Of a DNA stretch of 64,000 nucleotides, positions 1,599 through 64,000 are shown piece by piece. The stretch is taken from IMG/VR virus record IMGVR_UViG_3300024999_000029, positions 285,051-349,050 of that record; one strand, given 5' to 3'. Below the pieces are notes generated by a model that saw nothing but the letters and a program-made list of their open reading frames with translations, ran no database searches and had not been told where the DNA came from. Numbering within the stretch: the first letter of the stretch is position 1; the number at the start of each line of letters is the position of its first letter. Both the position numbers and the translations under genes were made by a program.

Positions 1599-2168
1599 TT
1601 GTTAGATAATATATCAGAAAAGTTTATAAATTGGCTTATAAAAATAAAAATTCTTAAGCAAGAACAATACTCAGATTGGGATTATTGGTTTAGGATTTTT
1701 TTATTTAATTCTATAGTTGTTTTTTCTTTATTAACAATAAATATATTGTTAGGCAGTTGGATTCAGTTAATTATAATTAGTATAGTAGTAAATGTTTTAC
1801 GAATGTATAGTGGAGGTTTCCATGCTCCACAAGGTAAATTAGAATATTGTGTTCTGTTAACAATTCCCTTAGTTACAATTGCATCTTTCATTGCAAAGTA
1901 TCTTCAATTATATCCATTGCAATTATTCATGGTTGCAGTTTTTTTAGGTATTCTTATAATCAGAAAAATTCCATTAATATCAGAAGAAGAAAAAGAAAAT
2001 AAGTCAGATAAATATTTTAGAGATAAATATATTTATAATTTTTTAATATTTTACAGTATTAGTTGTTTGGCAATAATGATAGATTCAAATATATGCAATA
2101 TTATTTCAAGCGCAATAAGCATGGGAATTATATTAGTTGCATTAGCAATGAAAAGTTCAACAAAATAA
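1599..2168 (+). CDS. agrB: AgrB-family peptide-processing membrane protease
   Basis: LRMYSGGFHA...EYC matches the AgrB LR..(A/S)GG.HA...C His/Cys motif; 189 aa, multi-TM. Confidence 0.8.
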   Translation: MLDNISEKFINWLIKIKILKQEQYSDWDYWFRIFLFNSIVVFSLLTINILLGSWIQLIIISIVVNVLRMYSGGFHAPQGKLEYCVLLTIPLVTIASFIAKYLQLYPLQLFMVAVFLGILIIRKIPLISEEEKENKSDKYFRDKYIYNFLIFYSISCLAIMIDSNICNIISSAISMGIILVALAMKSSTK

Positions 2169-2298
2169 AAGTATGATTTTATGGGAAGAAAAGAAAAATC
2201 TTCCCTTATACCTCTCAAATAATTAAAGAAAGGAATGAAATAAAGATACGTTTTTAATTATAGAAACGTATTAATTTAAATTGAGAGGATGATAAAAA

Positions 2299-2634
2299 AT
2301 GGGTAATTTCCATGCAGGAACGCATTATTGTGGTGCAATTCTTAAATCAACAGATAATTATATTTATGACCCAGTTACAAATCAAATAACTACTGGTGTA
2401 AATAGTCAAATTTTTTACTTAGAAGACCCAAGAACTGGTGAGACAACTATTGCAAGGGTATTTCTTTTTACTCCAATCGGGAGCGATATAAATTTCGATC
2501 TAAACAATAATTCAAATAGTAGACTTAAATGCCAAGATAGTATACCTAACGGAATCGAAAATGAAATGTTTTTAAGTTCATTTAAAGTTGGTAGTTTGGC
2601 AAACAGTATATTTGAATTCTATTGTGTCGTTTAG
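2299..2634 (+). CDS. hypothetical protein
   Basis: ORF with RBS GAGAGGA. Confidence 0.65.
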   Translation: MGNFHAGTHYCGAILKSTDNYIYDPVTNQITTGVNSQIFYLEDPRTGETTIARVFLFTPIGSDINFDLNNNSNSRLKCQDSIPNGIENEMFLSSFKVGSLANSIFEFYCVV

Positions 2635-2652
2635 AAAGGAGAAGTGAAATAA

Positions 2653-5388: not shown

Positions 5389-5649
5389 GTAAATAACGCA
5401 ATATCATAAAACCCGATAAAACATTCGATTTATGTTAATTTTGTACTAGAAAAACGAAGTATGAGTGAGTATTAATAAGATTGAAAGAGTTACAATATTT
5501 TACAAATATAAAGAAGAGTCGGAAATGGCTCTTCTTTTAAATTTACAATAAATGCATATGCATTTTACATATAGCGAATAGGAAGATGATTATTATTTTG
5601 AGTCTTCCTATTCTATTTAATTTAAATTATTGAATGGAGGATTTTTAGA

Positions 5650-6228
5650 ATGATTAATTTTAAACAAGTAAAACCAATTGAGGTTGAGTTTCAAGGAGAA
5701 AAGATAGAAGTAAATCAGTATATAAAATTTAAAGATAAACAGGTTTTTGTAGATTTATGCGTTAATGATTATTTTATTATGGATGAAAATGGTAAAACAA
5801 CTGGAACTTCTGATTTTGATAAAGATTTAACATACTTTTATTGTATTATGCATTATTTCACAAATCTAGAAATTCCAGAAAAAGATTTAATTTCAGATGT
5901 TTATGATAATATTGTTGGAAGTGGATTGTTTGATTTGATTTGCAAAACAATACCATCAGATATAAAAGCGGATATTGACAATAAGATTTATAATAGTATT
6001 TATAATGCTGAAATAAAATTAGAAGAAGAAATGAAAAAAGAAAATAGTATTCAAAATATAATTGTTAATACTATTCAAGGGTTAATGGAGCGAATTCCGA
6101 ACGAAAAGGAAATTGGGAAGCTAATAAAAAAAGCAAAGAAAGAATTTGAAAATTTTAATCCTGAAAAGCTAAAAGTGGTTAAGGATTTATATGATTTTTC
6201 CAATGGCAAAAGTGAAAAATCTGAGTAA
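5650..6228 (+). CDS. hypothetical protein (tail region)
   Basis: ORF with GGAGG RBS upstream of the tape measure region. Confidence 0.65.
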   Translation: MINFKQVKPIEVEFQGEKIEVNQYIKFKDKQVFVDLCVNDYFIMDENGKTTGTSDFDKDLTYFYCIMHYFTNLEIPEKDLISDVYDNIVGSGLFDLICKTIPSDIKADIDNKIYNSIYNAEIKLEEEMKKENSIQNIIVNTIQGLMERIPNEKEIGKLIKKAKKEFENFNPEKLKVVKDLYDFSNGKSEKSE

Positions 6229-6304
6229 AATATCGGTTTTGTTGAAATTCTAGCCTTAGAGTCGCAATGGTTCTGAGGCTTAATATTTAAGGGAGTGATG
6301 AATT

Positions 6305-6814
6305 TTGCCTTCTTTTAGGTCGTTGGACGAACTAAATAAACATTTAAGTAAAACTAATGGTTCTAGAGTGAATTTGTCTAATGGAATGAGTGTAATGAAG
6401 TTAATGAAACAAGAAGGAAAAAGACTATATGATATTATACAAAAACATATTAATACTTATTATGCTTCATATGATCCCGTTTACTACGAAAGAACCTATC
6501 AATTTATGAAATCGCTTAGGATTGAACCAGTTAAATTATCTGGTAATATAGCAAGTGTTAAAATATATTTTGACGAAGATTTAGCGACTCATCATTCAAT
6601 AATGGGAGGAAAAGATGGGTATCTTCCTATCTTGCTCAATGAAGGTTGGCAGTGGAAAAATGGGGATAAATCAAGATATCATATGAGTTTTTATCCTGGT
6701 TATCATTTTATAGAAAAAGCAATTAAAGAATATAATTCAAGCAATCCTTATGGTTTTAAAATAATTGTCCATAAAGAATGGAATGGCAATATGATTGAAC
6801 ACAAGGAATATTAA
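6305..6814 (+). CDS. hypothetical phage structural-region protein
   Basis: YDPVYYERT motif recurrent in large Firmicutes phages; position. Confidence 0.6.
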   Translation: MPSFRSLDELNKHLSKTNGSRVNLSNGMSVMKLMKQEGKRLYDIIQKHINTYYASYDPVYYERTYQFMKSLRIEPVKLSGNIASVKIYFDEDLATHHSIMGGKDGYLPILLNEGWQWKNGDKSRYHMSFYPGYHFIEKAIKEYNSSNPYGFKIIVHKEWNGNMIEHKEY

Positions 6815-6896
6815 TAAATGAGGTTGAAATATGCCTCATTTTTGTTTTGAAAATTATTATTTTATATAGATATAAAATATAAAAGGCGGTGACTGA

Positions 6897-7901
6897 ATGA
6901 GTAAAATAACTAGAGTTAAATACTTTACTGAAGATAGAAAATCTAAAATAAATCCTGATAATCTAAAATTATATGATAGGTATTTAAAGTCAAGTATTTT
7001 GAAAAATAAAGATGTCGAAACTACTACATATAAAGTTTATAAAAATTATATGGATATGTTTTTAGTTTATTTGTCTGAGCAATGGGATAATGTTGGTCTA
7101 TATGATCCAGAATTATTTAAAAACTCCATAGATGTAATCGAAGGATATATGGGTTTTTGTCAGGAAGTTTTACATAATAATAAGAAAGTAATTAACACGA
7201 AGGTATCAACGATATCTTCTTTTTATTTATGGTCATTAAAACGTAGATTAATTGATAGACATCCTTTCGATAAACAAGTAGATAGAATGAAAGGCGCTTC
7301 TGATGAGAAAATAATTAATTCTTACTTTCTAAATGATGAAGAAATAGAAAAAGTTTCTCAAGGAATAACTGAAGAAAATGGCTACGATATTATTGATAAA
7401 TTGCTTTGGAATATTATGCTTGATTCCGCAAACAGAATAGGAGCAATCGACAACTTAAAACTATCTAATTTAGACATAGAAAACTGTATGTTTACTGACA
7501 TAAGAGAAAAAAGAGGATATAGAGTTGAAGTTGTAGTATCTGAGCCAACCATGCAATTAATTGAGGAGTGGTTAGAAAAAAGAAAATCTATGGATAATTT
7601 AGAGGTAGATGCTTTATTTATCAGTAATTATGGTGGTGAGTATAGACAAATGACAAAATCTACACTCCAAAATCGAATTAAAAACATAGGTAAGATATTA
7701 GGTTTGGAAGATTTTCATAGTCACTGTATTAGGAAAACTACTTTGAATAATATTTATGACAAGACTGGGGATTTATCTTTAGCTGCCGAAATGGGAAATC
7801 ATAAATCTACTGAAACTACTAGGAGTAGTTACATAAAGCCTAAATCAAAAACAGAGATTAGAGACAAAATTAAAGAATTAATGGATAAAAAGAAAGAATA
7901 A
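6897..7901 (+). CDS. tyrosine recombinase (phage integrase family)
   Basis: Catalytic set R (ANRIG), HxxR (HCIRK), H (GNHKS), Y (SSYIK). Confidence 0.9.
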   Translation: MSKITRVKYFTEDRKSKINPDNLKLYDRYLKSSILKNKDVETTTYKVYKNYMDMFLVYLSEQWDNVGLYDPELFKNSIDVIEGYMGFCQEVLHNNKKVINTKVSTISSFYLWSLKRRLIDRHPFDKQVDRMKGASDEKIINSYFLNDEEIEKVSQGITEENGYDIIDKLLWNIMLDSANRIGAIDNLKLSNLDIENCMFTDIREKRGYRVEVVVSEPTMQLIEEWLEKRKSMDNLEVDALFISNYGGEYRQMTKSTLQNRIKNIGKILGLEDFHSHCIRKTTLNNIYDKTGDLSLAAEMGNHKSTETTRSSYIKPKSKTEIRDKIKELMDKKKE

Positions 7902-8006
7902 AATAAAACCCTTATTTTAATCATACCGCTTTTTGTTTTAATAAATTAAAAATATAAACATCTGAGGCAACTAGCCTCTTTTTATTTTCCTGAAAGGAGG
8001 ATATAT

Positions 8007-25743: not shown

Positions 25744-25882
25744 CTTACATAATTCAGACCTCAACCTAGAGGTCTTTTTCATGTAATCAAATGGTACTTT
25801 TATTGAGTTATTTAGACATCTAAGAAGGTGTCTTTTTATTTTGTTTATAAATAAAAATATAATTATAGAAAGGATTTAAAAC

Positions 25883-30038: not shown

Positions 30039-30094
30039 CATAAAACAAAACTTTTAATCAAAAATATAAAACATTTCAAATCGGAGGCGATATT

Positions 30095-36025: not shown

Positions 36026-37822
36026 TTAACCCGCTTCTTTGATATTTACAACAATTAAATTTTCTATAATCTTATTGGTAGTTAAAGGCACTTGCTTGCG
36101 CTCCCCGTTGAGTGCTTTTTGCATCCCAAAATCATTGCTTTTAATTGATTTTACAAACTCATCTATGTACAATTTAACATTAATACTTATTTTGTTTTTA
36201 TAAACAATAATCTCATCTACAATTTGTGAAATCATTATTTTTTTCTTTTCATTTGATGATATTTCAAACTCATTTTTCCAACTAGGGATAGATTTTTGTA
36301 AGCTAGTCATATCATCTAGTTCTATTTTTTTATCTTTAAATTTATCTTCCAACTCAATAATTTTAGAGTTAGTATCTTTTATTTCGTTTTCTTTCTGTTC
36401 CATTAAATTAGATAATTGGTGTGGTTTAAATTCACTTTTGCCCATTATGCTTTTAGTGACTTCTTTATTTAATATATTTAATTCTTTATAATTCTCTTCA
36501 TTTTGTTTTTGGAGTCTTTTTAGTGCTAACGTATCTTGTGAAATATTTTTAGTTTTAAATTTTTCTATTTCACTTATTAAATCAACTTGTTCAAGTTGCA
36601 CCAAATATTTATAAATTTCTTCCATTATTGTTTCTTCGATTTTAATTTTGGCATGAAGTGTTTGCCCATTACAATCAGTTTTACCAGTAGATTTTCCGCT
36701 ACATCTATAAAACACTCTTTGTTTTGTCATTACTGTTCCATCTTTATTTTCCCATTTTCTATTATTATAGGTAGTTGTTAGTGGAGATTGGCATTGCCCA
36801 CATTTTATGAACCCTACAAATAATAAGGGACTTTTTGTTTGAATTGGGAAGTGAATAGTGTTATCATTTTTTCTAGTCATAGTATTTCTTTTTTTTCTTA
36901 ATTGTTGTAATTTATCCCACATTTCTTCTTCGATTATAGCTAATTCAGGTATTTGAGTTGCCGATAATATCCAGTCATTTGAATTAATTCTATTTTTTGA
37001 TGCTCCGTCAGAAGATGTTTTACCATAAGACATATAGCCTTTATAAATTGGATTTCTTAAAATATAGTTTACAACAGATTCTCTCCATCCCGATTCTGTT
37101 TTAGATGGTATTTTAAGAGAATTTAAATATGTAGAGATTCTTTTACCTCCATATCCTTCTTCACATGCCAGTCTAAACATTTCTTTAACTGTTTTACTTT
37201 CATTCTCATCAATGCTTAATTTATGTAATTCCTTGTTCTTCTTATTTTGTTTCCCCGATTTTACTAATTCATAACCATATGGAGGTTTACCACCTCTAAA
37301 AGAACCCTCTTTTGTCATTTGAACATGGCTTTCGTTTACTCTTATCGATGTTTTAATACTTTCTCCGCTTGATGTCCAGTATCTTAAATAGTTTAAAAGC
37401 TTGTCTGTATGATTATCAAATTTTTGCTCTCCTTCTATTACAGACCATATTTCTATTCCTTGTTTACTAAACCATTCTACAACAAATGGCGTTTCGTCAT
37501 CTTTTCTTCCCAATCTGTCAAACATAAATACCAATAAAATATCAAATAACCCCATGCTCGCATCGGCTCTTACTTTTTGAAGTACGTCTCTGTCTTTCGC
37601 AGATTTTTTAAACCCCGATACTCCCATTTCATAATATTCTTTTACTAAGTTCCACTCTAATTGCTTATCAATAAACTCTCTACATGCGGTTTTTTGCATA
37701 GGTATATCATTATTATCCACTTGACCTTTTGTTGATACTCTATATAAACAAGCGACTCTTTTTACATTGCAATTAATTTGTGGGGTTTCCATTAAATATT
37801 CCTCCTTAGTGTAGCATTGCAC
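36026..37822 (-). CDS. large serine recombinase (integrase)
   Basis: YRVST, DRLGR, GGKPPYGY, ILRNPIYKG, Zn ribbon, coiled coil. Confidence 0.92.
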   Translation of the reverse strand: MQCYTKEEYLMETPQINCNVKRVACLYRVSTKGQVDNNDIPMQKTACREFIDKQLEWNLVKEYYEMGVSGFKKSAKDRDVLQKVRADASMGLFDILLVFMFDRLGRKDDETPFVVEWFSKQGIEIWSVIEGEQKFDNHTDKLLNYLRYWTSSGESIKTSIRVNESHVQMTKEGSFRGGKPPYGYELVKSGKQNKKNKELHKLSIDENESKTVKEMFRLACEEGYGGKRISTYLNSLKIPSKTESGWRESVVNYILRNPIYKGYMSYGKTSSDGASKNRINSNDWILSATQIPELAIIEEEMWDKLQQLRKKRNTMTRKNDNTIHFPIQTKSPLLFVGFIKCGQCQSPLTTTYNNRKWENKDGTVMTKQRVFYRCSGKSTGKTDCNGQTLHAKIKIEETIMEEIYKYLVQLEQVDLISEIEKFKTKNISQDTLALKRLQKQNEENYKELNILNKEVTKSIMGKSEFKPHQLSNLMEQKENEIKDTNSKIIELEDKFKDKKIELDDMTSLQKSIPSWKNEFEISSNEKKKIMISQIVDEIIVYKNKISINVKLYIDEFVKSIKSNDFGMQKALNGERKQVPLTTNKIIENLIVVNIKEAG

Positions 37823-38592: not shown

Positions 38593-38651
38593 TTTTTACC
38601 TCACTATTTTATATTTTACATTATTGTATTACTATAAATTTGTATTTTTAA

Positions 38652-39781: not shown

Positions 39782-39814
39782 ATAAATTCCACTCCTTTGA
39801 ATAAATGTGATTTT

Positions 39815-40057
39815 TTATTGAAATTTTTTAAATTTTTTAAATGTCTTATTAAAATCTTCTAAAGATTTATTAATTGATTTCATCGTATCTCTAAATGATT
39901 TATCTTGAATTACTTGAAAAACAATATTACATTTTTTACATTTAATTTCATTTTCATCTATTGCGTCTTGTATTTTTATTTTATTTATTTTATTGCAATT
40001 TGGACATTCTATTTCGACATTTTCATTGCCAAACATATTATTAAAATCTAATTTCAT
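39815..40057 (-). CDS. Zn-ribbon protein
   Basis: CPNC...CKKC. Confidence 0.6.
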   Translation of the reverse strand: MKLDFNNMFGNENVEIECPNCNKINKIKIQDAIDENEIKCKKCNIVFQVIQDKSFRDTMKSINKSLEDFNKTFKKFKKFQ

Positions 40058-42975: not shown

Positions 42976-43246
42976 CCTTTCATATTTTTATTTTCGATAA
43001 AATGATTCTTTTAATTTATATTTTAGTTTATTGATTAATAATATATTTATAATAATCTGCGGAACGTTTAATTGCCATTTTAGTCCAATCATAATCTTTC
43101 CACATTTTATTAACAATATCAATACACTCTTCTTTGGTAAATTCATAATTATTCACTTCAGAAATTTTTTTTTACTGTATTTAATAGTCCTAAATACATT
43201 GGATGTTCAGAAATCATATACATTGCCTCCTTTCTATAAAATCATT

Positions 43247-45590: not shown

Positions 45591-45779
45591 TTAATTGTTG
45601 ATTAAAAAAGCAATTTTATCTAAAATTTGAGCGATTGTTAATTTTTGAAACTCTTTTCGCTCTAGGTATTCAAGCAATATTGTTGTCATGTAATCAATCT
45701 GATTTTGATTTGGATATACTTCACACCTTTTAAAATACCACTTTTTATATTCTTGGATGATTTCTTCATTATTTATCAT
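45591..45779 (-). CDS. hypothetical protein
   Basis: ORF, RBS. Confidence 0.5.
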   Translation of the reverse strand: MINNEEIIQEYKKWYFKRCEVYPNQNQIDYMTTILLEYLERKEFQKLTIAQILDKIAFLINN

Positions 45780-48132: not shown

Positions 48133-48361
48133 CTACTTTTATATTTTAGATAATCTTCTATTTTATTCATTATCTATATTATTTTACTAATAATTTCGTT
48201 TACTTTATCTATCACTTCATTTAAGACTTTTGCCAACATTCTAATGTCAGACTTAGAATCATGAAAAATTCCTATACTATCACTCTGCCTAATTTTTGTT
48301 TTTATTGGCTTAATTTTTTCATATACTTTTATCATAATTTTCTCCTCATAAAACAGAATTT

Positions 48362-48835
48362 TTAATTAATTTTTCGCTTTCTCCATTTGTTATTTTCTTT
48401 TCGTAAGTTTTTAAAAAACTCAGTTAGATAATTTTTAAATGGTTTTATTTCTTTTAACGATGTAAAGTTTAAAATTTTTATACCAGTATCGCCAAACCTA
48501 TCAAAACTTTCTTCCCTATACCATGATACTAATATAGGATATTCGTCATCAGAAGGCACTAATGTGTTTTCATTAACATTATTTAATAAAAATACCTCTA
48601 ATTCCGATATGTTGTTTATCAAAAAATTTTCTTCATCACAATTTTCATTCTCATAATTTTCATATCTAACGTCTAAATCATTTAATATATGATATAGTGT
48701 TTCAAACATGGGAATATCTCCACCACAATAATTTTCTGCACCATGCTTTAAAAACCATTTCAATAGTTTGATAAATTCAGAATGATTGTTAATTATGCAT
48801 TGATTAGTGCTATGTGTATAATCTTTTAATGCCAT
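48362..48835 (-). CDS. hypothetical protein
   Basis: ORF, RBS. Confidence 0.6.
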   Translation of the reverse strand: MALKDYTHSTNQCIINNHSEFIKLLKWFLKHGAENYCGGDIPMFETLYHILNDLDVRYENYENENCDEENFLINNISELEVFLLNNVNENTLVPSDDEYPILVSWYREESFDRFGDTGIKILNFTSLKEIKPFKNYLTEFFKNLRKENNKWRKRKIN

Positions 48836-49402: not shown

Positions 49403-49920
49403 AATTTTATATCCCCTTTTTATTTGAATAATTTTTACCTTTTATTTAGATATCTCAAAGCGGTTTCCAAACCTTCTAAATATCCTTCTTTCCATGCTTT
49501 ATCTTTTATATAATTAATTTCGCTTGAATAACTATCTGCTTGATTTTTAATAAATTCTATTTCATCATTAATCCTTAAAATAGTTTCTTCAATTAAATTA
49601 TCCATAAAAATATCCTTTCAATTAAAGTAAGATTTTGTCTGATAATATTTTTCTACAATCATACCAATCTTTAGCTTCTTCTACCGTTAATTCTCTACCA
49701 TCTTCTTCTCTTAAACAAAAATCATCACTATAATTTTCACTGATTTCTTCATCAGAATAACCACCTACTTTACAATTCAAAATTCCATTAATTTGTTTAT
49801 CTCTTTTATCCCACCAATGCATAATTGGTTCTCCTCTCAATAAAACCCCGAATTTATCAAAAATAAGTTATTCTGACAGCCCCATAGAGCGATTATTTTT
49901 AGGTGGGTGGTACGATTACA

Positions 49921-50736: not shown

Positions 50737-50917
50737 TGTTTTCCTCCACTTTTATAAATAATTCACATATACATTCTTGCGTTTGGCGAAAATCTAGGCA
50801 GGGACACAAAGAATTTTCGTCGGTTAATATTCTGCAAGGACAATAGTTTGAATTTGCTTTTAGTTTTTCTCGTATTTGATTTACTTTTTCTTTATCTGGA
50901 TTTAATATTGCTTTCAT
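50729..50917 (-). CDS. ferredoxin-thioredoxin reductase catalytic-domain-like protein
   Basis: YCPCR...CPC...ECICELF. Confidence 0.75.
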   Translation of the reverse strand: MKAILNPDKEKVNQIREKLKANSNYCPCRILTDENSLCPCLDFRQTQECICELFIKVEENND

Positions 50918-51600
50918 TAAAACTCCCCTTTTATTGTAGTTTTTATAATCTTATTACACTTATTTTTTATATCTTTTAATTCTTTTACGCTATACGGTTT
51001 TACATCGCAATCAGATAAGTTTTTAGATTCAAACTGCTGCAATATATATTCAGTAACATTAAAACTTTTTAATACTTTAGCAATTTCTATACAATCTTCT
51101 GCATTCACAAATTTAGGATAAACAGTAGTTCTAAACTCGTATTGTATATTTGCATCTAAAATTAATTCTATTGATTCTAAAATGCGTAGATATTTAACCT
51201 CTTTGTTTGTAATTAAGTTGTATTTTTCTTCTGAAGTTTTAATATCCATCCCCACATAGCTTAAATAAGGAAGTATTTCATTTAATACCATGGGTTTGTT
51301 TCCATTAGTGTGAATTCCAACTGTGAACCCATTCATACAAAGTTCTTTAATTAAATCAGATATTCCAGACCACTCGGTACATTCTCCACCACTTATAACA
51401 ATATGATCTATGAAATTTTTACGCTTAATTAATTTAGGCAACACGTCTTTTTTGAAATTAATATTCTTTTGTTTTATTAATGGCTTATTGTGGCAAAAAT
51501 CACAATCCCAACTACATTGCCCAATGAACAATGTAGTTGAAATGTGTTGGGGGTAATCTAACATAGTAGACCAAACTACTGACTTAATCATCTTTTTCAA
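50917..51600 (-). CDS. nrdG: anaerobic RNR activase (radical SAM)
   Basis: CSWDCDFCHN, SGGE, YEFRTT. Confidence 0.85.
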   Translation of the reverse strand: MKKMIKSVVWSTMLDYPQHISTTLFIGQCSWDCDFCHNKPLIKQKNINFKKDVLPKLIKRKNFIDHIVISGGECTEWSGISDLIKELCMNGFTVGIHTNGNKPMVLNEILPYLSYVGMDIKTSEEKYNLITNKEVKYLRILESIELILDANIQYEFRTTVYPKFVNAEDCIEIAKVLKSFNVTEYILQQFESKNLSDCDVKPYSVKELKDIKNKCNKIIKTTIKGEF

Positions 51601-55122: not shown

Positions 55123-55577
55123 AAATCTATCTCCTCTTCATGTTAAATTATACACTACCCAGTAATAAAGTCAATAACTATTTTATATTTTAGTTTATTG
55201 ACTTTGTATAAAAACAGAGTTTAATCGAAATCTTCTTCCTCAAATTCTATTTCATTGCCAAAGAGAGTGCTTTTTAAATAAATTATATATCCCAGCATTC
55301 TTATTTTGTTTAATTCTAATGCTCTAACTTCATATTCTACAGTATCAATTACATCTTTTATATCTTGAAAATTTGTTACCCATTGTCTTATATCCATAAT
55401 AATTTCTCCTATTGATTTTTCTTTTTTGAATATATCTCTTTCCCATCTGCTGTTTTCACTCTAGCATAATTAACATTAGTTTTATTTACTTCATACTCTT
55501 CTTTACTACAAGTCACCCAAGTATTTTCTTCCAGAAAGTTTAAAAAGTAATTTTCAAAACTATTATCTTTCATTTTA

Positions 55578-56024: not shown

Positions 56025-56073
56025 GGTTTTCTCCTTTCGTTAAAGATATTTTCATTTAGATGAATTATTTTTA

Positions 56074-56343: not shown

Positions 56344-56414
56344 ATTATACCTCCTTGTTTAGACGATATGATTATTTGTTTGTTCTCCATAATAATTTCT
56401 CCTTTTAATATATT

Positions 56415-56699
56415 TTAGTTTAATTGTTTCCCTATGTTTTTTATCTCATCTCTTGCCTCTTTAAGTATTTCTTTAAATTCTTTCAATGTAACCAATCCTG
56501 CGCTATCTACCTTTTCAGCCACAAACAGCTTTAGCAATTTTTCAAATAGATTATCCCAATTGCCAAAGTATCCTTCTGCTGTCCACACTACTGTTTCTTC
56601 TTTTGTGGTTTTGTTCTTACTAATACCTTTTTTCTGTAGTGTGAATTGCTTATCCTCCACATTTACTCTGTAATCGTCGGTAAGTATTACTGCTCCCAT
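56415..56699 (-). CDS. hypothetical protein
   Basis: ORF, RBS. Confidence 0.6.
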   Translation of the reverse strand: MGAVILTDDYRVNVEDKQFTLQKKGISKNKTTKEETVVWTAEGYFGNWDNLFEKLLKLFVAEKVDSAGLVTLKEFKEILKEARDEIKNIGKQLN

Positions 56700-56725
56700 A
56701 ATTTTATTCTCCTTTATATTTTTAT

Positions 56726-56908
56726 TTAATCTAAATCTCTTTTATCACATTGTTTTTCTTCATCCCACCAGCCTCCAGCTTGTTCTTGTGGTGTACAAGG
56801 ATTGTCTGATCTTTTTTCAAGTAGTTCACGATAACATTCTTCTTGTGTCTTCCCGTTAAATCGACTTCTTAAATATGCATCTCCCCAACATTTTTCGCAC
56901 CCTGCCAT
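56726..56908 (-). CDS. small Cys-rich hypothetical protein
   Basis: ORF, RBS. Confidence 0.55.
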   Translation of the reverse strand: MAGCEKCWGDAYLRSRFNGKTQEECYRELLEKRSDNPCTPQEQAGGWWDEEKQCDKRDLD

Positions 56909-56943
56909 TATTTTTCTCCTTTCATATAAAATTGGGATTTGGT

Positions 56944-57228
56944 TTAATCTATAATTTTAATGTTTTTTCTTCTATCTATTTCTTCTGCTCTTTTATATGC
57001 GTCATCTAAATTATTATATAAACTCTTTGAATTATCTATAAAACAATAATCATTGTAATCTATTCTATAATTCCATATATTCGTAAAAGAAATAGACGAT
57101 ATTTCAGTTTTCACAATCATGATTTTTCCAAATCTTTTATAAACATAATACACTGTTTGAAATGTATGAAATTTAGGAGTATATACCTTTTCTTCCCCAT
57201 TATTTTCTATAACTAGCTTTATATTCAT
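56944..57228 (-). CDS. hypothetical protein
   Basis: ORF, RBS. Confidence 0.55.
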   Translation of the reverse strand: MNIKLVIENNGEEKVYTPKFHTFQTVYYVYKRFGKIMIVKTEISSISFTNIWNYRIDYNDYCFIDNSKSLYNNLDDAYKRAEEIDRRKNIKIID

Positions 57229-57281
57229 ATTTTCTCCCTTTCTTTTTAAATAAAATTTTGCTTTTATCTTAATTTTATATT

Positions 57282-58730
57282 TTACTTTATTAATAAGTTA
57301 TTAAATATTTCTTCTAATACATTAACTACTATTGAATTACCAGCCATTTTATAAAGTTGAGTATCGGATATTTCATTCTCTTTTAATATGTAATAATCTT
57401 CATCATCAAATCCCATAAGTCGCAAACATTCTTTTGGAGTGAGTTTTCTAATCCGATATAATTCATGAATTAATACTGTTGCACTACTTGTTGTGCTTCC
57501 ACATTGTGTTGTTTGTGTTGGTGCAATATCATTTATTTCTGTCTTATTGTAGGGGTTGAACATACTTGGAATATATCCATTTTCTTTAATAAACTCGTTA
57601 TATTTGTCTTGAACAAATTTTTGATTTTCTAAATACAATCCCGTATGACTACCTATCCCACCTCCATTAGATTTTTGACAGCAAGCAATCCCTTTACTAT
57701 CGTAAACCCTATATCCTTCTTTATAGTTTCTACTTAAATCTTTTTCATTTTCAATCCATTTATCTGTGACATCAATACCTCCAATAAATCTTAACTTATT
57801 TTCTTCTAATATTTTAGGTTGCCTATTGCCTCCACTCATAGTATTTAATGTAGGACTTAATCCGTCAGAAGAGTAGACTCTTCTGACCTGCTCATTGCCT
57901 CTAATATCCAACATGCCAAGCTGAAGAATTCTAACTGGGTCTTTGAAGTCTCTTGCTTTAAGTGTTGGACATATTCCGTTTTCCGAATATACATCTAACC
58001 CATGATGACCCGTATTTCCAACATTACCAACTATATTTAGACTATTATCATTATTTAAGATTTTTTCTTTGTTTAATAATTGGTTAATTAATTTATTTGT
58101 TTTCTCTTGACTTATATAATATTTTTCATCTACCTCATTTTCTAAAATATCTTTAAGTCTTATCCCATTATCAAATTCTTCTGGAAACTCAAATGTTTTA
58201 TTATCAACATCTTTTCTAATGCTAATTATAAATATTCTTTCTCTATTTTGGGGTACTCCAAAATCTTTTGCATTTAATACTTTCCAATAATTATTGTATC
58301 CCGCATCATCTAAATCTTTTAATATCTGGTCAAAATCATTCTTAAATTTCTTTTGTGTTAGTGCCTTTACATTTTCAATTATTGAATATTTAGGTTTTTT
58401 GCATTGTAATATTCTTAACCCTTCATAATACAAACCACTTCTTGTTTTATTGCCTTCTTCATCTATGAAACCTTTTTGTTTTCCTGCTGTAGAAATATCG
58501 GTACATGGAAAACCCCAAGTCATCAAATCAAAATCTTGTAATTCGGTTTCATTAACTTTGGTTATATCTCCAAGATTTAATTCTTCATTTTTATTATGTA
58601 TAAGGCTATAGGATTTACTTGCCCAACGATCTATTTCTGAATAGCCAATTAATTCATATGTAAAATTTATTCTTTGTAAAGCTTTTTCAAATGCCCCAAT
58701 GCCTGAAAATAAACTTAAAACTTTTAACAT
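57282..58730 (-). CDS. dcm: C5 cytosine DNA methyltransferase with long multi-TRD variable region
   Basis: LFSGIG, GFPC, ENV, QNRER, RKLTPKECLRLMGF, AGNSIVV. Confidence 0.92.
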   Translation of the reverse strand: MLKVLSLFSGIGAFEKALQRINFTYELIGYSEIDRWASKSYSLIHNKNEELNLGDITKVNETELQDFDLMTWGFPCTDISTAGKQKGFIDEEGNKTRSGLYYEGLRILQCKKPKYSIIENVKALTQKKFKNDFDQILKDLDDAGYNNYWKVLNAKDFGVPQNRERIFIISIRKDVDNKTFEFPEEFDNGIRLKDILENEVDEKYYISQEKTNKLINQLLNKEKILNNDNSLNIVGNVGNTGHHGLDVYSENGICPTLKARDFKDPVRILQLGMLDIRGNEQVRRVYSSDGLSPTLNTMSGGNRQPKILEENKLRFIGGIDVTDKWIENEKDLSRNYKEGYRVYDSKGIACCQKSNGGGIGSHTGLYLENQKFVQDKYNEFIKENGYIPSMFNPYNKTEINDIAPTQTTQCGSTTSSATVLIHELYRIRKLTPKECLRLMGFDDEDYYILKENEISDTQLYKMAGNSIVVNVLEEIFNNLLIK

Positions 58731-58756
58731 TTATACCCTCACTTTTATATTTTGTA

Positions 58757-59479
58757 TTATTGCATGAAACTATTTAACCATCGCTCAATTCTAGTGTATC
58801 TTTCTTGATTGAATAATTTATTTTTAGGAATAAACCACACATTCCAATCCAATTTTCTTTTCTTGCTGTTGCAGCTTTTACATGCGGGTATACAATTATC
58901 AATTTGATTAGAGCCGTTATTGATTGCATGTTCCTTATGTAGTTTATTATTATATCTTTCTTTAGCATTTTCTTCAGGCATTCCGCAAAATGAGCATTGA
59001 TAATTAAAATAATTTTTACATTTAATCCATTCTTCTTCTGAAATATCATGTTCTTTATGCATTTCTCTTTCAATTCTGTATTTTTTCATTTTGTCTGGAT
59101 TAGCTTTTTGATATTCTTTAGTATAGTTATAAATATCCTCTTTATTATTTTCTCGCCAAACGATCATTTTTAATTTTTCTTGCTCCATATTGTCTTGATA
59201 ATATTGCTTTCTTTGGACGCTACGGTCGTCTCGGTGTTCATAATAATATTTCGTAGCTTCATCTTGTAAATATTCTTTATTATTGCTGTAATAGTTTTTA
59301 TTGTTTTCTTTTTGACAAACTATACAAAAATCATTAACTTTATCTCGGTTGCTATTATTTTTTCTAAAATTATCTTGATTCATAATGAACCATTCTTTGC
59401 ATTTTTTACATTGTTTATATTCCATACCATTAATAGTCTTATGATAATCTTCATATTTTCTATAGCTAATATTTAACAT
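58757..59479 (-). CDS. HNH endonuclease
   Basis: CSFCG...HKEH...NCIPACKSCNSKK. Confidence 0.8.
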   Translation of the reverse strand: MLNISYRKYEDYHKTINGMEYKQCKKCKEWFIMNQDNFRKNNSNRDKVNDFCIVCQKENNKNYYSNNKEYLQDEATKYYYEHRDDRSVQRKQYYQDNMEQEKLKMIVWRENNKEDIYNYTKEYQKANPDKMKKYRIEREMHKEHDISEEEWIKCKNYFNYQCSFCGMPEENAKERYNNKLHKEHAINNGSNQIDNCIPACKSCNSKKRKLDWNVWFIPKNKLFNQERYTRIERWLNSFMQ

Positions 59480-59519
59480 CTCCTCTTAAATTTTCACTTT
59501 TCGATATATTAATCTATCT

Positions 59520-59939
59520 TTAAAATATTACTACCATACTTGGAAACGGAGCTGAATTTTTACTGCAACCAAACTTCAGCCTACCTTTTATAAACCTAAT
59601 CTTTGCCTTGCCATATATGTAATCATGAAACCACCGTGTATCAGTTCTTGCTGGTAATAGCATAACTACTTTTGTATTTTGTCTTATTCCCTCTTCATAG
59701 CTTTTTTTAACCCATTTGCCTATTTCCCTGCCGTAAGGAGGGTTCACAAAGACTATTTCGCCACTCCAATCTTGTTCTAAGCCGTTATTTTCTATGGTGA
59801 AATACAAATTACATTTTGCATTTTCTGGCGTAGCGCAAGGATCTAAGGTGAAATGAAATTCTTTATCTAATTTGTCAAAGAAATCTTGAGGAGTAGCCCA
59901 AAGATCTGTTTGACTGCTAAACATTAAATCTGTATTCAT
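59520..59939 (-). CDS. phage N6-adenine DNA methyltransferase
   Basis: WATPQDFF, NPPY, PARTDT, APFPS. Confidence 0.9.
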   Translation of the reverse strand: MNTDLMFSSQTDLWATPQDFFDKLDKEFHFTLDPCATPENAKCNLYFTIENNGLEQDWSGEIVFVNPPYGREIGKWVKKSYEEGIRQNTKVVMLLPARTDTRWFHDYIYGKAKIRFIKGRLKFGCSKNSAPFPSMVVIF

Positions 59940-59991
59940 TTTAACCTCACTGTTTTATATTTTAGTTAATTACGATCAAACTTTACTTTTA

Positions 59992-60348
59992 TTAAATAAT
60001 TTTTATTTCATTTTCAGACCAATAATCACCTAACTCTAAACACCTATAAACATCCAAATCCCCACAATGATGCGCTCGCTCTACAGTAACAAGACAACCT
60101 ATGTATTTTATCTTCCATGATTTATTATTTTCTTCTTTTTCATTAATCTCTTTGTATAAATGATACATACCAGTTTGATTAATATCATCTACAGCAATAA
60201 TTTTAGCTTTGTATTGTTCACTATGATAATGCAAATTTCTGTCGTAAATTTTACCAGTCTTAATTCCAACATAATCTCTATTTTCATTTAATAAACATTC
60301 TTCGTTCAAACCCATGCAATTATTTTTCCACACATGATATATTTGCAT
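59992..60348 (-). CDS. hypothetical protein
   Basis: ORF, RBS. Confidence 0.55.
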   Translation of the reverse strand: MQIYHVWKNNCMGLNEECLLNENRDYVGIKTGKIYDRNLHYHSEQYKAKIIAVDDINQTGMYHLYKEINEKEENNKSWKIKYIGCLVTVERAHHCGDLDVYRCLELGDYWSENEIKII

Positions 60349-60451
60349 ATTATCCTCACTTTCTATAAAACTGCATTTTTATTGTAATTCTTCCTCTACG
60401 GGCAGTAATGTTTCAGCCTCCGCTTTTTTAAAAATCATGTCTGACCATTGC

Positions 60452-60877
60452 TCAAATACGTTTTTCATCGTTTTTCTCCTCTAAAATTTTAACTTTAGCT
60501 AATTCTTCAGTATTTGAAGATTTCATCGGCTCATGAAAATTAACTGTACTTCCACCTTGGGGATATTTATACCAACTCATATCATGTCTAAGTACTTGTA
60601 TCAAATCCCATGAAATTTTTGAATCTTCATGCGTTTGAGAGTTAAAAATTCCATAATATGAATTATAAGATAATTCTGGGAAGTATATATTTCTTAATAT
60701 TTGTATTGCATCTTCTTCGTCTTTTGTAGAGAAGTATTTATTTAACTCTCTATTTACTCTTAGCCTAAATAAACTTGATATCTCATTCAATTGACCCATT
60801 ATTAATCTACTATAAAGGTCTAATGCGTTTTGAATTACATATGCTTGTTGCTCTGACACTTCTAATTGAACTCTCAT
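60452..60877 (-). CDS. hypothetical protein
   Basis: ORF, RBS. Confidence 0.6.
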   Translation of the reverse strand: MRVQLEVSEQQAYVIQNALDLYSRLIMGQLNEISSLFRLRVNRELNKYFSTKDEEDAIQILRNIYFPELSYNSYYGIFNSQTHEDSKISWDLIQVLRHDMSWYKYPQGGSTVNFHEPMKSSNTEELAKVKILEEKNDEKRI

Positions 60878-60878
60878 A

Positions 60879-61127
60879 TTAACTATTTACCTCCGCAACT
60901 ATTTCATCTAAACTTTTATATTCTTTTTCAACACTACATCTCACAAATTTCTGTTTATCGTTTGGTGAACTTTCTTCATAAGTTATAAACTTATAAAACA
61001 TTGCAACACCATCTTCATATGCAACAATAAAATTTGTTAAATTATTAAAGCTATCACAATCTGAATAAGCAAAATATGATGTTCCTGCCGAATGTAATAT
61101 TGAAACGAACTTTTCTAAATCAGTCAT
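60879..61127 (-). CDS. hypothetical protein
   Basis: ORF, RBS. Confidence 0.55.
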   Translation of the reverse strand: MTDLEKFVSILHSAGTSYFAYSDCDSFNNLTNFIVAYEDGVAMFYKFITYEESSPNDKQKFVRCSVEKEYKSLDEIVAEVNS

Positions 61128-61166
61128 AGTCCCCCTCCTGTTTTATATTTTACTTTAAATAATGGT

Positions 61167-61508
61167 TTACATAAATTCTAATGGTACTTTATTTTTAATA
61201 CAATATTCCATACCTTCTACTAACTCTAGAGCTTCATTTTTATCATAATCATCGTCATCCCATTTATTAACTAATTCTTTTAGTCTTGGTGCAACTTTTT
61301 CACATTCTTCAACTGTTAAAATGCCATCGCAATCTGAATGATTTAAAAATGGCTCAATATTATCTTTGATTGTTTCAAATGAAATATCTCCACCAAATCC
61401 TTTCATGGCACTAAGATTTATGCCTATTTTATTTGCGAGTCTTCTTCTAAAATTACCGAATCCTCCATAGCTCCAATGTGCATCACTATGATTAAAATCC
61501 AGGTCCAT
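61167..61508 (-). CDS. hypothetical protein
   Basis: WSYGGF..FR, HSDCDG motifs common in phages. Confidence 0.65.
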   Translation of the reverse strand: MDLDFNHSDAHWSYGGFGNFRRRLANKIGINLSAMKGFGGDISFETIKDNIEPFLNHSDCDGILTVEECEKVAPRLKELVNKWDDDDYDKNEALELVEGMEYCIKNKVPLEFM

Positions 61509-61618
61509 AATAATATCCTCCTAATATTTTTATACTTTTCTTTAAAACACGAAATTTATCTAAATTTTCAATTTTGAAACTCTTGTGGCGGTAGGGTTTC
61601 AAAATGATGTTATTTGCT

Positions 61619-61966
61619 TTAATCTTCTATATACCATTTTCCATTTAATATTTCTTCAGCGGAAATACCATAGCCATTATTATCGGCAATCACATTGCCT
61701 TCTCCGAATACTATATTATATCTGTTGTTTCTAAATTTTTCTCTTTCACATTTTATTGTTTTACCATTTTGGTATGCTTTAATTGCAGTCGTAAAATCAA
61801 CTGGTTCTTGAATTAGTTCCCACTCTGTATTAAAATAATAAGAATATTCACATTTAAACCATCCATTGTCAGCGCATACCGTATTATAAAGCCCACTTTC
61901 CAACTTACATTTAAATCTTAATTTTGGATTTTCGGTTAACATTTTAATCATTTCCCAAGTTTTCAT
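61619..61966 (-). CDS. hypothetical protein
   Basis: ORF, RBS. Confidence 0.6.
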   Translation of the reverse strand: MKTWEMIKMLTENPKLRFKCKLESGLYNTVCADNGWFKCEYSYYFNTEWELIQEPVDFTTAIKAYQNGKTIKCEREKFRNNRYNIVFGEGNVIADNNGYGISAEEILNGKWYIED

Positions 61967-62021
61967 ATTGGCTTCTCCTTTATATTTTAGTTAATAAGAT
62001 TTAATTTTACTTTAAATCACA

Positions 62022-62403: not shown

Positions 62404-62446
62404 TTGTGCATCTCCTTTTATATTTTATTTAATTAGAATTGAAGTT

Positions 62447-62752
62447 TTATAGTATAGATTTTACTGCTTCCCATAGCGCATCACATAATTCATCACCTTC
62501 AAAACATTTGCCACGAAGCCTTTCGGAACCACCAATAGAATATACTCCCACAACTATGTACTCATGCCTATTTTTAGATTCTGTTAAACCTATACGTGGA
62601 AAGCAAAAATCAGAATTGCATAATATCTCTATCATTTTTCCAATTGTATAATGCTCCGCTCTACTGAACACTAAATCCGTTTTAGCTTCTAACGTTCTTC
62701 TTTGTTCACGAGATATTTCTTCAATTTGTCCCTGCCCTATATGTTGTTTCAT
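62447..62752 (-). CDS. hypothetical protein
   Basis: GGAGG RBS before MKQHI; ELCDALWEAVK. Confidence 0.6.
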   Translation of the reverse strand: MKQHIGQGQIEEISREQRRTLEAKTDLVFSRAEHYTIGKMIEILCNSDFCFPRIGLTESKNRHEYIVVGVYSIGGSERLRGKCFEGDELCDALWEAVKSIL

Positions 62753-62795
62753 ATCTAACCTCCATTTTAATAAAACTGAAATTTTACTGCAATAT

Positions 62796-63503
62796 TCATT
62801 TTTCTTTATCTTTTTCATTTAACCAATTGCAGTACTTTTCACATTCTTCTTTTGACTTAAATAATATATCACCCTTATACTCTGAAGCCATTGATTCATC
62901 AAAAGTGTCTATAAATTGAGTAAATTCTAATTTATTCCAACGACAATCATCATCTTCGCTACTCTGATATTTCGGTGTGATTCCGAATTCTCTTCCATAA
63001 TAATCTTTTGATTTATACAAATTTAGTGTTTCTATTACAGTGTGTGTGGGAACATATAGTCTATAGTTTTTTTGACACGAACAATTTTGTTTTATCTCAT
63101 CTCCACTAGGCGATTTATATGTAATTTTTCTATCTTCGTCGCATAATTTACATTTTTTAATCATAGCCCATGTAAAACCTACATAATATCCACTATATTT
63201 TTCTTCAAATGGTTTTAACAATTCTGAGAATTTTTTTCGTAAAAAATCATATTCTAACGACTTTTCTTTTTCCTCAATTTCTCTTTCTTTTCTACTGAGT
63301 TCATATTCTCTTTTTGTTAAAGCTTGTTTGATTTCTTTATTCTCATTTTTAAGTTTATAATTTTCATTTTTAATATTTTCATAATATGTTTTAACTTCTT
63401 TCTTTAATATATCTTTCATCTTATTAGCAAATTCAATAGCTACATTGTCATATTCGCTTGGCTCATAATACTCTCGTTCATTATAGTCATCAAAATCATA
63501 CAT
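62796..63503 (-). CDS. hypothetical protein (coiled coil + Zn finger)
   Basis: CKLCD...CSC. Confidence 0.65.
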   Translation of the reverse strand: MYDFDDYNEREYYEPSEYDNVAIEFANKMKDILKKEVKTYYENIKNENYKLKNENKEIKQALTKREYELSRKEREIEEKEKSLEYDFLRKKFSELLKPFEEKYSGYYVGFTWAMIKKCKLCDEDRKITYKSPSGDEIKQNCSCQKNYRLYVPTHTVIETLNLYKSKDYYGREFGITPKYQSSEDDDCRWNKLEFTQFIDTFDESMASEYKGDILFKSKEECEKYCNWLNEKDKEK

Positions 63504-63552
63504 AGATATATTTCCTTTCTATTATATTTTTCATTAAAATCTGTGTTTCGTG

Positions 63553-63858
63553 TTAATTTTTTTGATAACCCAATTCATCAGCTATACTTTCAAATAACTC
63601 AAAAACCTTATCTATTAATTCTGGCTGTTGAGAAAAACTAGGCTCTATCTTTTCACTCGGTATCCCCATTTTAACTTGACAGTCTTTGCATAAGAATTTT
63701 GAAGTTTGCGTAACTAAATTGCTAGTATATCTTTCATCTATATAACAACTTCCCTTTCTACCTATTAAAAACTTTATCGTCCTATATTCTGAATCTGAAC
63801 TTTTATTATAGGTTTCTTCATGACCACACTTGTCGCAAATATGTATTACTTTTTCCAT
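63553..63858 (-). CDS. Zn-finger hypothetical protein
   Basis: CDKCG...LCKDC. Confidence 0.6.
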   Translation of the reverse strand: MEKVIHICDKCGHEETYNKSSDSEYRTIKFLIGRKGSCYIDERYTSNLVTQTSKFLCKDCQVKMGIPSEKIEPSFSQQPELIDKVFELFESIADELGYQKN

Positions 63859-64000
63859 AATTTCTCCTTATTTTTTTATCAAAACCGCAATTTTAATTTA
63901 ATCTCTTGTGGTTTCAAAAGCCATTACATATCCTTCCAAACTAACAAAATCAATAAGTCCATAATTATCGCAATTGGTGCATTCCCAAGGCATAATGCCT

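Follow-up and report, generated by a model that had tools for sequence, protein, structure and literature searches.

Genome comparisons place a palindromic intergenic element of SPbeta-like phages at mosaic joints, as a candidate pivot for module exchange

Cluster A mycobacteriophages carry ~24-36 stoperators, which are bound by the L5 repressor. In Acinetobacter plasmids, many dif-like sites bound small reassorting modules, the pdif modules (PMC6449649, PMC13141974, PMC5790767), and the dif-type sites difH and difSL have arms that end in GAAAA and TTTTC beside the centre (PMC5357621). T4-like phages contain PeSLs, motifs between small genes that lie at the boundaries of insertions, deletions and replacements among close relatives (PMC2839356, PMC4122927), and in phage SPbeta the protein MrpR, whose fold is that of a tyrosine recombinase, binds the element SPBRE at 10 places, as mapped by chromatin affinity purification sequencing (ChAP-seq; PMC10516654). 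Here, we analysed a dispersed palindrome, ATAAAA-N6-TTTTAT, in a 64,000-nucleotide stretch of DNA (the window), positions 285051-349050 and thus the last 64 kb of the IMG/VR groundwater virus record IMGVR_UViG_3300024999_000029. Comparison of related phage genomes shows that the sites coincide with mosaic joints, and indicates that each site keeps its own 6-bp centre at the same map position while the left, the right or both flanks are replaced. Among described systems, that of the pdif modules is the closest.

An earlier note, made from the letters of the window, had listed 17 copies of the palindrome, and all 17 coordinates carry ATAAAA-N6-TTTTAT at the mismatch level it gave, with perfect copies at 2165, 57250 and 60365, one-mismatch copies at 5416, 7903, 25786, 30040, 39801, 48348, 49840, 55208, 59975 and 62770, and two-mismatch copies at 6225, 38634, 61542 and 62433. 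One more perfect copy, at 28410, had been overlooked; it falls within a tail-fibre gene and probably arose by chance. Further one-mismatch copies are found at 28913, 35264, 41222, 41346, 42997, 45602 and 50917. The four perfect copies in the window compare with 0.41 expected (~ten-fold), and the 21 copies with at most one mismatch compare with 6.8 ± 3.0 expected, a number that none of 100 shuffles reached. Over the whole record, a spacer of 6 gives 23 perfect copies and 124 with at most one mismatch, against 0-5 and 30-67 for the other spacers from 0 to 20 and 2 and 31 for a reversed-palindrome control; in intergenic DNA only, 97 copies occur at N6, whereas spacers 2-10 give 4-20 and Markov resamples 7.8 ± 3.4. 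The comparison of N6 with other spacers, by which the earlier note had proposed to check its motif, thus came out in favour of the motif, only spacer 6 being enriched. Its placement of the sites at gene boundaries likewise holds for the record at large, with 101 of the 124 sites in the 14% of the record that is intergenic.

The record comprises 349,050 bp with a G+C content of 28.9%. Comparison of its proteins with themselves revealed ~90 protein pairs at a constant offset of 157-178 kb with identities of 21-97%, and the record therefore consists of two collinear, diverged ~175-kb SPbeta-like genomes placed head to tail, here called unit A (~1-173.3 kb of the record) and unit B (the remainder, including the window). 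The final 120 bases of the record (348931-349050; window 63881-64000) exactly repeat 173265-173384, a repeat that begins at a palindrome site, and instead of a single molecule the 349-kb 'jumbo' record probably represents two co-occurring phages that the assembly ran together. Both units are distant relatives of SPbeta (terminase identity 36%) and encode homologues of YopP, YopQ and MrpR/YopR in the order found in SPbeta, together with a YomN/YomM pair in the tail module, a YorL polymerase and an MtbP methylase. The tail genes of unit B occupy the plus strand of the window along with a tyrosine recombinase gene (6897-7901) and a TnpB element, and a minus-strand array of ~55 small genes fills the window from ~36 kb to its end.

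Homology breakpoints between related phages fall at the sites, a comparison that had also been proposed in the earlier note and that supports it. For SPbeta and phi3T, same-strand intergenic gaps were classed by the presence of phi3T homology on both sides (conserved), on one side (junction) or on neither; a site occurs in 12 of 19 junction gaps but in 4 of 50 of the conserved class (odds ratio 19.7, p = 6e-6), and in 2 of 38 neither-side gaps. Restricting the test to gaps of 35-250 nt gave 12/17 against 3/32 (p = 2e-5), and performing it from the phi3T side gave 7/15 against 4/27 (p = 0.03). A 3,213-bp block shared by SPbeta and phi3T at 99.97% identity starts at the first base of site 83687 and ends inside site 86885, with unrelated DNA beyond both ends, and at four other sites the identity between these phages begins within one to a few bases of the outer edge of the site. 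In the minus-strand arrays of units A and B, 1 of 25 gaps with both genes and their adjacency conserved holds a site, against 28 of 103 at junctions (p = 0.016); between unit-specific genes the figure is 42 of 157. Six of the seven boundary sites that touch unit-A homology in the minus-strand array of the window are one-sided junctions, namely 39801, 48348, 49840, 50917, 57250 and 60365. Of 22 pairs, 13 have their maximum-likelihood change-point between positions -6 and +4 relative to the site, which together with the junction enrichment maps the exchange points to the site, as is characteristic of Xer/dif systems.

In four runs of groundwater and sediment metagenomes, contigs that are 85-99% like window 56001-62000 represent several strains and lose likeness at many places, so the samples contain a mixed and diverse population of these phages. 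One such break, in variant contigs of two groundwater samples, falls at 57254, inside site 57250, although these contigs yielded nothing decisive, and a candidate joint of 57283 to 60359 was set aside as unreliable, having 23 matching letters on one side.

At a joint, the site is retained with the homologous side, whichever that is, mostly with the upstream gene in the A/B junction pairs and mostly with the downstream gene between SPbeta and phi3T, and therefore belongs to neither module. Differences between the arms of allelic pairs lie mostly in the arm beside the non-homologous flank, 13 against 3 in the other arm. Among collinear A/B pairs, 24 have centres identical at 6/6 positions and two at 5/6, while the arms of these pairs differ at 29 of 312 positions (9.3%), and in at least nine A/B pairs and five SPbeta/phi3T pairs the arms and centre form an identity island of 18-23 bp between flanks that are unrelated on both sides. 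Ten sites of the window have a same-centre partner in unit A. Site 7903, directly behind the recombinase gene, is one of these, and all but one of the ten belong to the 17 copies first listed. By count, the two-mismatch class at N6 is not enriched (72 against ~70 for other spacers); sites 6225, 38634 and 62433 are nevertheless regarded as real because each has an identical-centre partner at the collinear place in unit A. Within a single genome, every centre differs from all the others, also when read in the opposite orientation, and palindromic centres do not occur (0 identical pairs against ~3.3 expected over unit A, unit B and SPbeta), which extends to three genomes the earlier remark that all spacers in the window differ. 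Centres that are shared between allelic sites and never repeated within a genome are the pattern expected of recombining partners, in what is an indirect test.

The anatomy of the element was examined after orienting the sites by the strand of the local genes. The end of a site precedes the next start codon by a median of 20 nt, a distance that, like those to stop codons, carries the error of our own crude open reading frame (ORF) calls, and the site mostly lies 1-3 nt ahead of the extended ribosome-binding sequence GAAAGGAGG. The left arm supplies the TAA stop codon of the upstream gene in 21 of 76 cases, and overall the sites lie between a stop codon and a ribosome-binding site or between a terminator and a promoter. 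Because single half-sites are not enriched at any position ahead of start codons, the palindrome is a single unit; the same test ruled out two separate signals, a stop-codon context and a U-rich element ahead of the Shine-Dalgarno sequence. When half-sites from the record, SPbeta and phi3T were pooled, conservation ran five bases further out, as TYTRA before ATAAAA, and the full element is therefore a 28-bp dyad of the form 11-6-11. Inverted arms around a variable 6-bp core, to which the earlier note had drawn attention, are indeed the anatomy of tyrosine-recombinase core sites, which in the Xer/dif type consist of ~11-13-bp inverted arms and a 6-8-bp centre; with arms that reach 11 bp and enrichment of spacer 6 only, the present element has the 11-6-11 layout of dif.

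The centre is free in sequence, save that its final base (position 12) tends to be a purine on the coding strand; TTTTAA is tolerated more than TTAAAA. Covariation is absent from flanks and centre, compensated double changes are not in excess, RNA hairpins of the sites reach only 0 to -3.3 kcal/mol and no Rfam family matches the site, so that neither the stable hairpin of an intrinsic terminator nor the covariation of a structured RNA is present, although true GC-rich terminators adjoin some sites. Conserved arms around a free centre are the trace of a dimeric DNA-binding protein and not of an RNA structure, and we infer that the site is read as double-stranded DNA by a dimeric protein.

A second and commoner intergenic motif, P2, (AAC)TAAAATATAAAA, stands directly ahead of the ribosome-binding site or 6-8 nt ahead of a TTGACA-N17-TATAAT promoter, on either side of the palindrome and at a variable distance from it. 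Its core decamer, AAAATATAAA, has 213 copies in the record, of which 189 are on the strand of the local genes. Many copies are chance occurrences inside genes (Lys-Tyr-Lys codons), and the extended motif is confined to the intergenic subset. P2 resembles SPBRE in flavour and could be a candidate operator of the MrpR homologue.

The same site recurs in related phages. SPbeta has 38 copies with at most one mismatch at N6, against 4-7 at other spacers, located between the cistrons of the early cluster, in divergent regions, just before or after annotated terminators, and in the leaders that follow the yosX and yorM promoters with SPBRE (PyosX, PyorM). At the same threshold, phi3T has 33 copies against 7 in the reversed control and c-st has 45 against 27, 13 of the c-st copies being perfect, whereas no enrichment was found in SPO1 (0 against 3), SPP1 (1 against 1) or the A+T-rich phage G (46 against 57). 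Perfect ATRAAA-N6-TTTYAT copies, again counted against the reversed control, number 21 against 0 in Tsamsa, 24 against 0 in Geobacillus E3, 38 against 2 in Perkons, 10 against 0 in a Staphylococcus SPbeta-like phage and 12 against 0 in Alicyclobacillus KKP_3916; LC76P1 (4 against 0) and Sundance (3 against 0) have few sites, and Lactococcus phiL47 shows no enrichment (2 against 2). Clostridioides phage LIBA2945 is without clear enrichment, having no perfect ATAAAA-N6-TTTTAT and 45-51 copies with at most one mismatch against 32-33 in the control. The site is specific to the SPbeta-like temperate phage lineage, and its arms are invariant across host genera, which is unlike the normal behaviour of immunity operators. 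A description of this element was not found in the searchable literature.

In the longer gaps of c-st, the site comes after the upstream terminator or stop codon; AAATTAAATTAAA stands ~10 nt beyond it, ahead of a consensus sigma-A promoter, TTGACA-N17-TATAAT, so that at least there the site, lying upstream of promoters, is a DNA-level element. Within c-st 1-50 kb this cassette of site, AAATTAAATTAAA box and promoter spans ~80 bp and is seen, for example, at 3484, 20281, 29636 and 41245. A role of the palindrome as a promoter of a phage RNA polymerase or of sigma-A was ruled out, as it has no -10-like hexamer (A at -11, T at -7), the SPbeta sites lie downstream of known promoters and some sites run directly into terminators. 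Late transcription in SPbeta is the work of the single-subunit polymerase YonO, which uses one start and one promoter (PMC5467207); searches of the record with Pfam, phmmer and tblastn detected no RNA polymerase or sigma factor.

Judging from the sequence comparisons, we put at about 0.45 the probability that the sites are crossover pivots at which modules are exchanged with gene order preserved, the enzyme probably being a protein of tyrosine-recombinase fold. A site in the gaps between genes would then be the pivot at which related phages trade gene modules, by a conservative crossover between two same-centre sites on two co-resident genomes. A putative tyrosine-recombinase-fold protein would perform this crossover as Xer does at dif and as has been proposed for the Acinetobacter pdif modules, and the different centres within a genome would prevent internal deletions and keep the gene order by limiting crossover to partners with the same address. 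The wider proposal that each SPbeta-like genome holds a grid of ~40-60 address-coded sites, with the same arms throughout and a 6-bp centre peculiar to each map position, at which a phage-encoded protein would join only equal addresses of two co-resident genomes in a homology-independent, order-preserving reassortment, is possible but doubtful.

Such a system would resemble several of those described above. Like dif, the element has 11-bp arms and a 6-bp centre, although the arm sequence differs from that of dif, and like difH and difSL, which are sites for single recombinases, it has A4/T4 runs next to the centre. The likeness to pdif modules lies in many sites per replicon, centres that differ between sites and small modules in different combinations. 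Unlike pdif and dif sites, however, the arms here are symmetric and not composed of a XerC and a XerD half, the replicon is a phage and the enzyme would be phage-encoded; moreover, pdif modules move and invert, whereas gene order is preserved here. The same module in another context, order or orientation, as seen for pdif, was not found, since units A and B as well as SPbeta and phi3T are collinear and their modules are replaced in place.

Several genes with a tyrosine-recombinase fold are present in the lineage, and the candidates for the putative site enzyme are the YomM-like recombinase of window 6897-7901 and the YopP-like or MrpR-like proteins encoded outside the window. The YomM-like protein retains all catalytic residues (Arg, His-x-x-Arg, His, Tyr), and its best matches among solved structures are XerA (6.5e-12), XerH (2e-6) and XerD. 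Its gene is the last of a three-gene operon (window 5650-7901) just upstream of the tape-measure gene, where it is preceded by genes for two proteins of ~165-190 aa, and in both units sites lie at both ends of the operon, which in the window are 5416 upstream and 7903 downstream. The operon is an oddity within the tail module, yet SPbeta (yomO-N-M), LC76P1, Sundance and KKP_3916 all share it, and Sundance and KKP_3916 have a site at the syntenic place upstream of it. The earlier note was correct that the recombinase is intact and has a site right after it; the link it drew from this enzyme to the sites is not established, and the phyletic profile does not single out this recombinase among the candidates.

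Several observations weigh against crossover at the sites. The closest homologue of the recombinase, a 53%-identical YomM-like protein, belongs to LC76P1 with its four sites, Sundance has only three, and it is instead the phages with additional homologues of MrpR and YopQ that are rich in sites. SPbeta YomM and YopP carry a Lys at the position of the second catalytic Arg, and the ChAP-seq of MrpR yielded only the 10 SPBRE peaks. The A/B gap test, when repeated with DNA homology and a control for length, pointed in the same direction and was not significant (9/29 against 1/14, p = 0.13). Conservation of the centre can be scored only where centres survived, an ascertainment that the 24:2 ratio addresses in part, and in A/B pairs sampled by flank homology, which is unbiased, centre identity is 0.81 against 0.84 for the homologous flank; the statement that the centre is more conserved than the arms is made because of the 24:2 ratio and the identity islands, and not because of this sample. 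Because the arms are alike in all sites, a crossover cannot be located within a site, and because many sites abut the upstream stop codon, breakpoints at the outer edge are partly forced by compaction. Finally, the laboratory hybrid Hyb1phi3Ts-SPbeta crossed over inside 20 kb of 99.7% identity and not at a site, an event that, lying in long homology, says nothing about the sites.

A dimer-bound palindrome could also be a stoperator-like operator, at which a conserved phage DNA-binding dimer other than MrpR would block or insulate transcription in the gaps and so silence prophage read-through or shut off early genes, the coincidence with breakpoints being secondary; we regard this as unlikely, though a live competitor. 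It accords with the palindrome, conserved half-sites and free centre typical of dimeric binders, with the absence of RNA covariation, and with the location of sites in transcribed gaps, 5' leaders and terminator-promoter intervals. The stoperators of the L5 repressor in cluster A mycobacteriophages are a precedent for dozens of one short site in the short intergenic spaces of early and late operons of a temperate phage. However, stoperators are 13 bp long, asymmetric, oriented with transcription, variable with immunity group and bound by the immunity repressor, whereas the present element is a palindrome that does not vary from genus to genus and is not a target of the known master repressor. 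Related phages usually differ in their immunity operators, but the arms here are the same from Bacillus to Clostridium phages, and a purely regulatory role leaves unexplained the near-absence of sites from conserved pairs (4/50; 1/25), their concentration at junctions and the retention of the centre despite a change of both flanks. Site-rich phages do carry the MrpR/YopQ lysogeny module, which in this record lies outside the window at 214271-217211, with its unit A counterpart at 54226-57155, and contains a CI/LexA-like repressor (HTH_3 and Peptidase_S24) divergent to the MrpR homologue, as well as a YopQ homologue that matches the DndB family. The CI/LexA-like repressor beside mrpR was rejected as the binder, its relatives being generic and not tracking the site. 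As for MrpR itself, the idea that the palindrome is the operator of an MrpR-type master repressor, an equivalent of SPBRE, is scarcely credible. An MrpR homologue with Pfam MrpR domains and a full-length match to the solved MrpR structure (PDB 8a0a, 2e-22) is encoded in both units, and the phyletic co-occurrence fits, but SPbeta carries SPBRE in addition to 38 of the present sites, MrpR ChAP-seq found only the 10 SPBRE places, and MrpR proteins are only ~27% identical while the arms are invariant. The palindrome is not SPBRE, since the core of the latter, AATATGTAT, recovered from the ten ChAP-seq target genes, lies inside promoters and has a different sequence, and the palindrome is more numerous in SPbeta. 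The two are alike as repeated intergenic elements of one phage lineage with a tyrosine-recombinase-fold protein as the bound or putative partner, and they differ in that SPBRE has ~10 copies, all at operon starts, with SPbeta having both elements. Of the genome-wide repressor operator that the earlier note had offered as its alternative, the version with MrpR, which binds SPBRE, is excluded, and that with another repressor remains a rival.

Also unlikely in our view, though likewise a live competitor, is a passive hotspot, in which the site with P2, a promoter or a terminator would be a repeated regulatory cassette and general phage proteins would recombine it by short homology, as for PeSLs. 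These provide a precedent in T4-like phages (PMC2839356), composite cassettes do exist (site, AAATTAAATTAAA and TTGACA-N17-TATAAT in c-st; site, P2 and promoter or ribosome-binding site in the record), the phages encode Sak4-like, RecU-like and exonuclease proteins, and both elements are short conserved motifs of variable regions that coincide with module boundaries. But 12-22 conserved bases split by an unconserved centre are a poor substrate for homology, arm differences extend right up to the base beside an identical centre (for example ATAAAT against ATAAAA), and equal centres occur only between allelic sites, never within a genome. A PeSL is a host-type promoter with a terminator hairpin that recombines by homology and gives mini-circles, whereas the element here is an 18-28-bp A+T-only dyad with a locus-specific centre. 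The dyad itself is not a promoter or a terminator, and such signals adjoin only some of its copies; no signature of circles or reordering was seen, the genes staying collinear. Very unlikely is an RNA element, in which transcripts would form a weak AU hairpin, either shortly before the ribosome-binding site or at their 3' ends, that would act as processing site, stabiliser or translational operator. The tight spacing to the start codon (median 20 nt), the adjoining extended ribosome-binding site, the coding-strand purine preference at position 12, the tolerance of TTTTAA over TTAAAA and the SPbeta sites in regions transcribed from PyosX and PyorM would suit it, but a conserved stem with a free loop is the reverse of what RNA-protein sites show, covariation, stable hairpins and an Rfam match are wanting as described, and the c-st sites lie upstream of promoters and after terminators. 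Disfavoured, too, is the integron-like shuffling that the earlier note had named first, in which recombinase 6897 would excise and insert single-gene cassettes at Tn916-type coupling junctions. The intact tyrosine recombinase with sites at both operon ends and the single genes or small gene groups between sites would fit, and integron attC/attI sites, too, lie at the ends of single-gene units and are served by a tyrosine recombinase. We consider it highly improbable because centres are unique within a genome and related genomes are collinear, a pattern of allelic exchange, and the closest recombinase homologue sits in a phage with few sites. Moreover, attC sites are 57-141 bp long, act as folded single strands and yield circular cassettes at one attI beside intI, whereas the sites here measure 18-28 bp, have unstable stems and unique centres and show no attI-like array head, and the analogy with Tn916 coupling sequences is without support.

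The sites of the window, the P2 examples and the two recombinase genes are collected in Table 1.

Table 1. Palindrome sites, P2 motif examples and recombinase genes, in window coordinates; partners in unit A are given in record coordinates.
Feature	Position	Strand	Context
Site, perfect	2165..2182		TAA of the site is the stop of ORF 1599-2168; followed by a GC-rich hairpin; unit A partner absent
Site, 1 mismatch	5416..5433		27 nt past stop of 911-aa ORF; upstream of three-gene recombinase operon
Site, 2 mismatches	6225..6242		overlaps stop of ORF 5650-6228; identical centre at unit A 112609
Tyrosine recombinase, 334 aa	6897..7901	+	PF00589, 6.6e-23; counterpart of SPbeta YomM, tail module
Site, 1 mismatch	7903..7920		1 nt past recombinase stop; same 18-mer and centre at unit A 114906, flanks unrelated
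Site, 1 mismatch	25786..25803		two terminator-like hairpins on either side; identical 18-mer at unit A 134040
Site, 1 mismatch	30040..30057		intergenic; identical 18-mer at unit A 144568
Large serine integrase	36026..37822	-	Resolvase, Recombinase and Zn_ribbon_recom domains; SPbeta SprA/YokA-like; outside the site system
Site, 2 mismatches	38634..38651		abuts stop, followed by P2 and ribosome-binding site; same centre at unit A 150191
Site, 1 mismatch	39801..39818		stop inside arm; next start 19 nt; one-sided homology junction; same centre at unit A 152107
Site, 1 mismatch	42997..43014		directly after P2 motif; next start 21 nt
Site, 1 mismatch	45602..45619		21 nt upstream of start codon with ribosome-binding site
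Site, 1 mismatch	48348..48365		stop in arm; abuts ribosome-binding site; unit A homology begins at site position 10
Site, 1 mismatch	49840..49857		next start 17 nt; one-sided junction
Site-like, 1 mismatch	50917..50934		ribosome-binding site in centre; start codon overlaps arm; identical 18-mer at unit A 159902
Site, 1 mismatch	55208..55225		overlaps stop, followed by P2 and TTGACT-N17-TATAAT promoter; same centre at unit A 162971
Site, perfect	57250..57267		methylase stop (with P2) on one side, next ribosome-binding site on the other; one-sided junction
Site, 1 mismatch	59975..59992		abuts stop, followed by P2 and ribosome-binding site; same centre at unit A 167489
Site, perfect	60365..60382		next start 16 nt; one-sided junction
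Site, 2 mismatches	61542..61559		next start 33 nt; weakest member
Site, 2 mismatches	62433..62450		overlaps stop; same centre at unit A 172743
Site, 1 mismatch	62770..62787		8 nt past a stop, 17 nt ahead of a start
P2 examples	38608, 43015, 54888, 55182, 57274, 59954, 61142, 62417	-	
P2 examples	6874, 7949, 30061	+	

Other features of the record were noted alongside the sites. A tRNA-Ala (GGC) gene (35938-36012, minus strand) lies directly downstream of the serine integrase gene and may mark the attachment-site region. Window 32289-33546 contains the TnpB gene (IS605 OrfB / Cas12f-like) and, after it, a RAGATH-18 RNA match at 33485-33546 that is probably the guide-like RNA end of the element. 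An HNH homing-endonuclease gene (9752-10651) separates ORFs 8007-9611 and 10786-14244, which seemingly share the tape-measure function, and five paralogous YoqL-like HNH endonuclease genes with mutual identities of 31-43% are scattered through the early arrays, at window 58757-59479 (minus strand) and at record positions 153363, 188427, 212246 and 219886; over 121 aa, the copy in the window shares 45% identity with YoqL of SPbeta. At window 25057-25175 on the plus strand lies a full-length match (93 bits) to the Rfam Fusobacteriales-1 cis-regulatory RNA, upstream of ORF 25156-25743, and because of this RNA, recombinase homologues in Fusobacterium phages (35-39% identity), the ~29% G+C and an anaerobic NrdD, a hint at the host is obtained. 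No near-identical phage was found in INPHARED, no close relatives of two window proteins were found in IMG/VR or in GTDB genomes, and the phage was present in none of the RNA runs searched.

How non-homologous modules of phage genomes join cleanly at gene boundaries is a long-standing question of phage mosaicism, usually answered by invoking either illegitimate recombination with subsequent selection or exchange at regulatory motifs that both partners share. The present data describe dense dif-like sites at the mosaic joints of a large and well-studied lineage, that of the B. subtilis model prophage SPbeta, phage c-st and their anthracis-group and staphylococcal relatives, and these sites look like a built-in recombination grid rather than ordinary punctuation. 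Should they be operators instead, they would add to SPbeta a second genome-wide layer of control beside MrpR and SPBRE. If they are enzyme-driven crossover points, they would represent a new way of organising viral gene exchange and would give a role to the unexplained conserved tyrosine-recombinase-fold genes YomM and YopP; and if the grid of addresses is real, a dedicated 'sexual' mechanism would lie behind the mosaicism of these phages.

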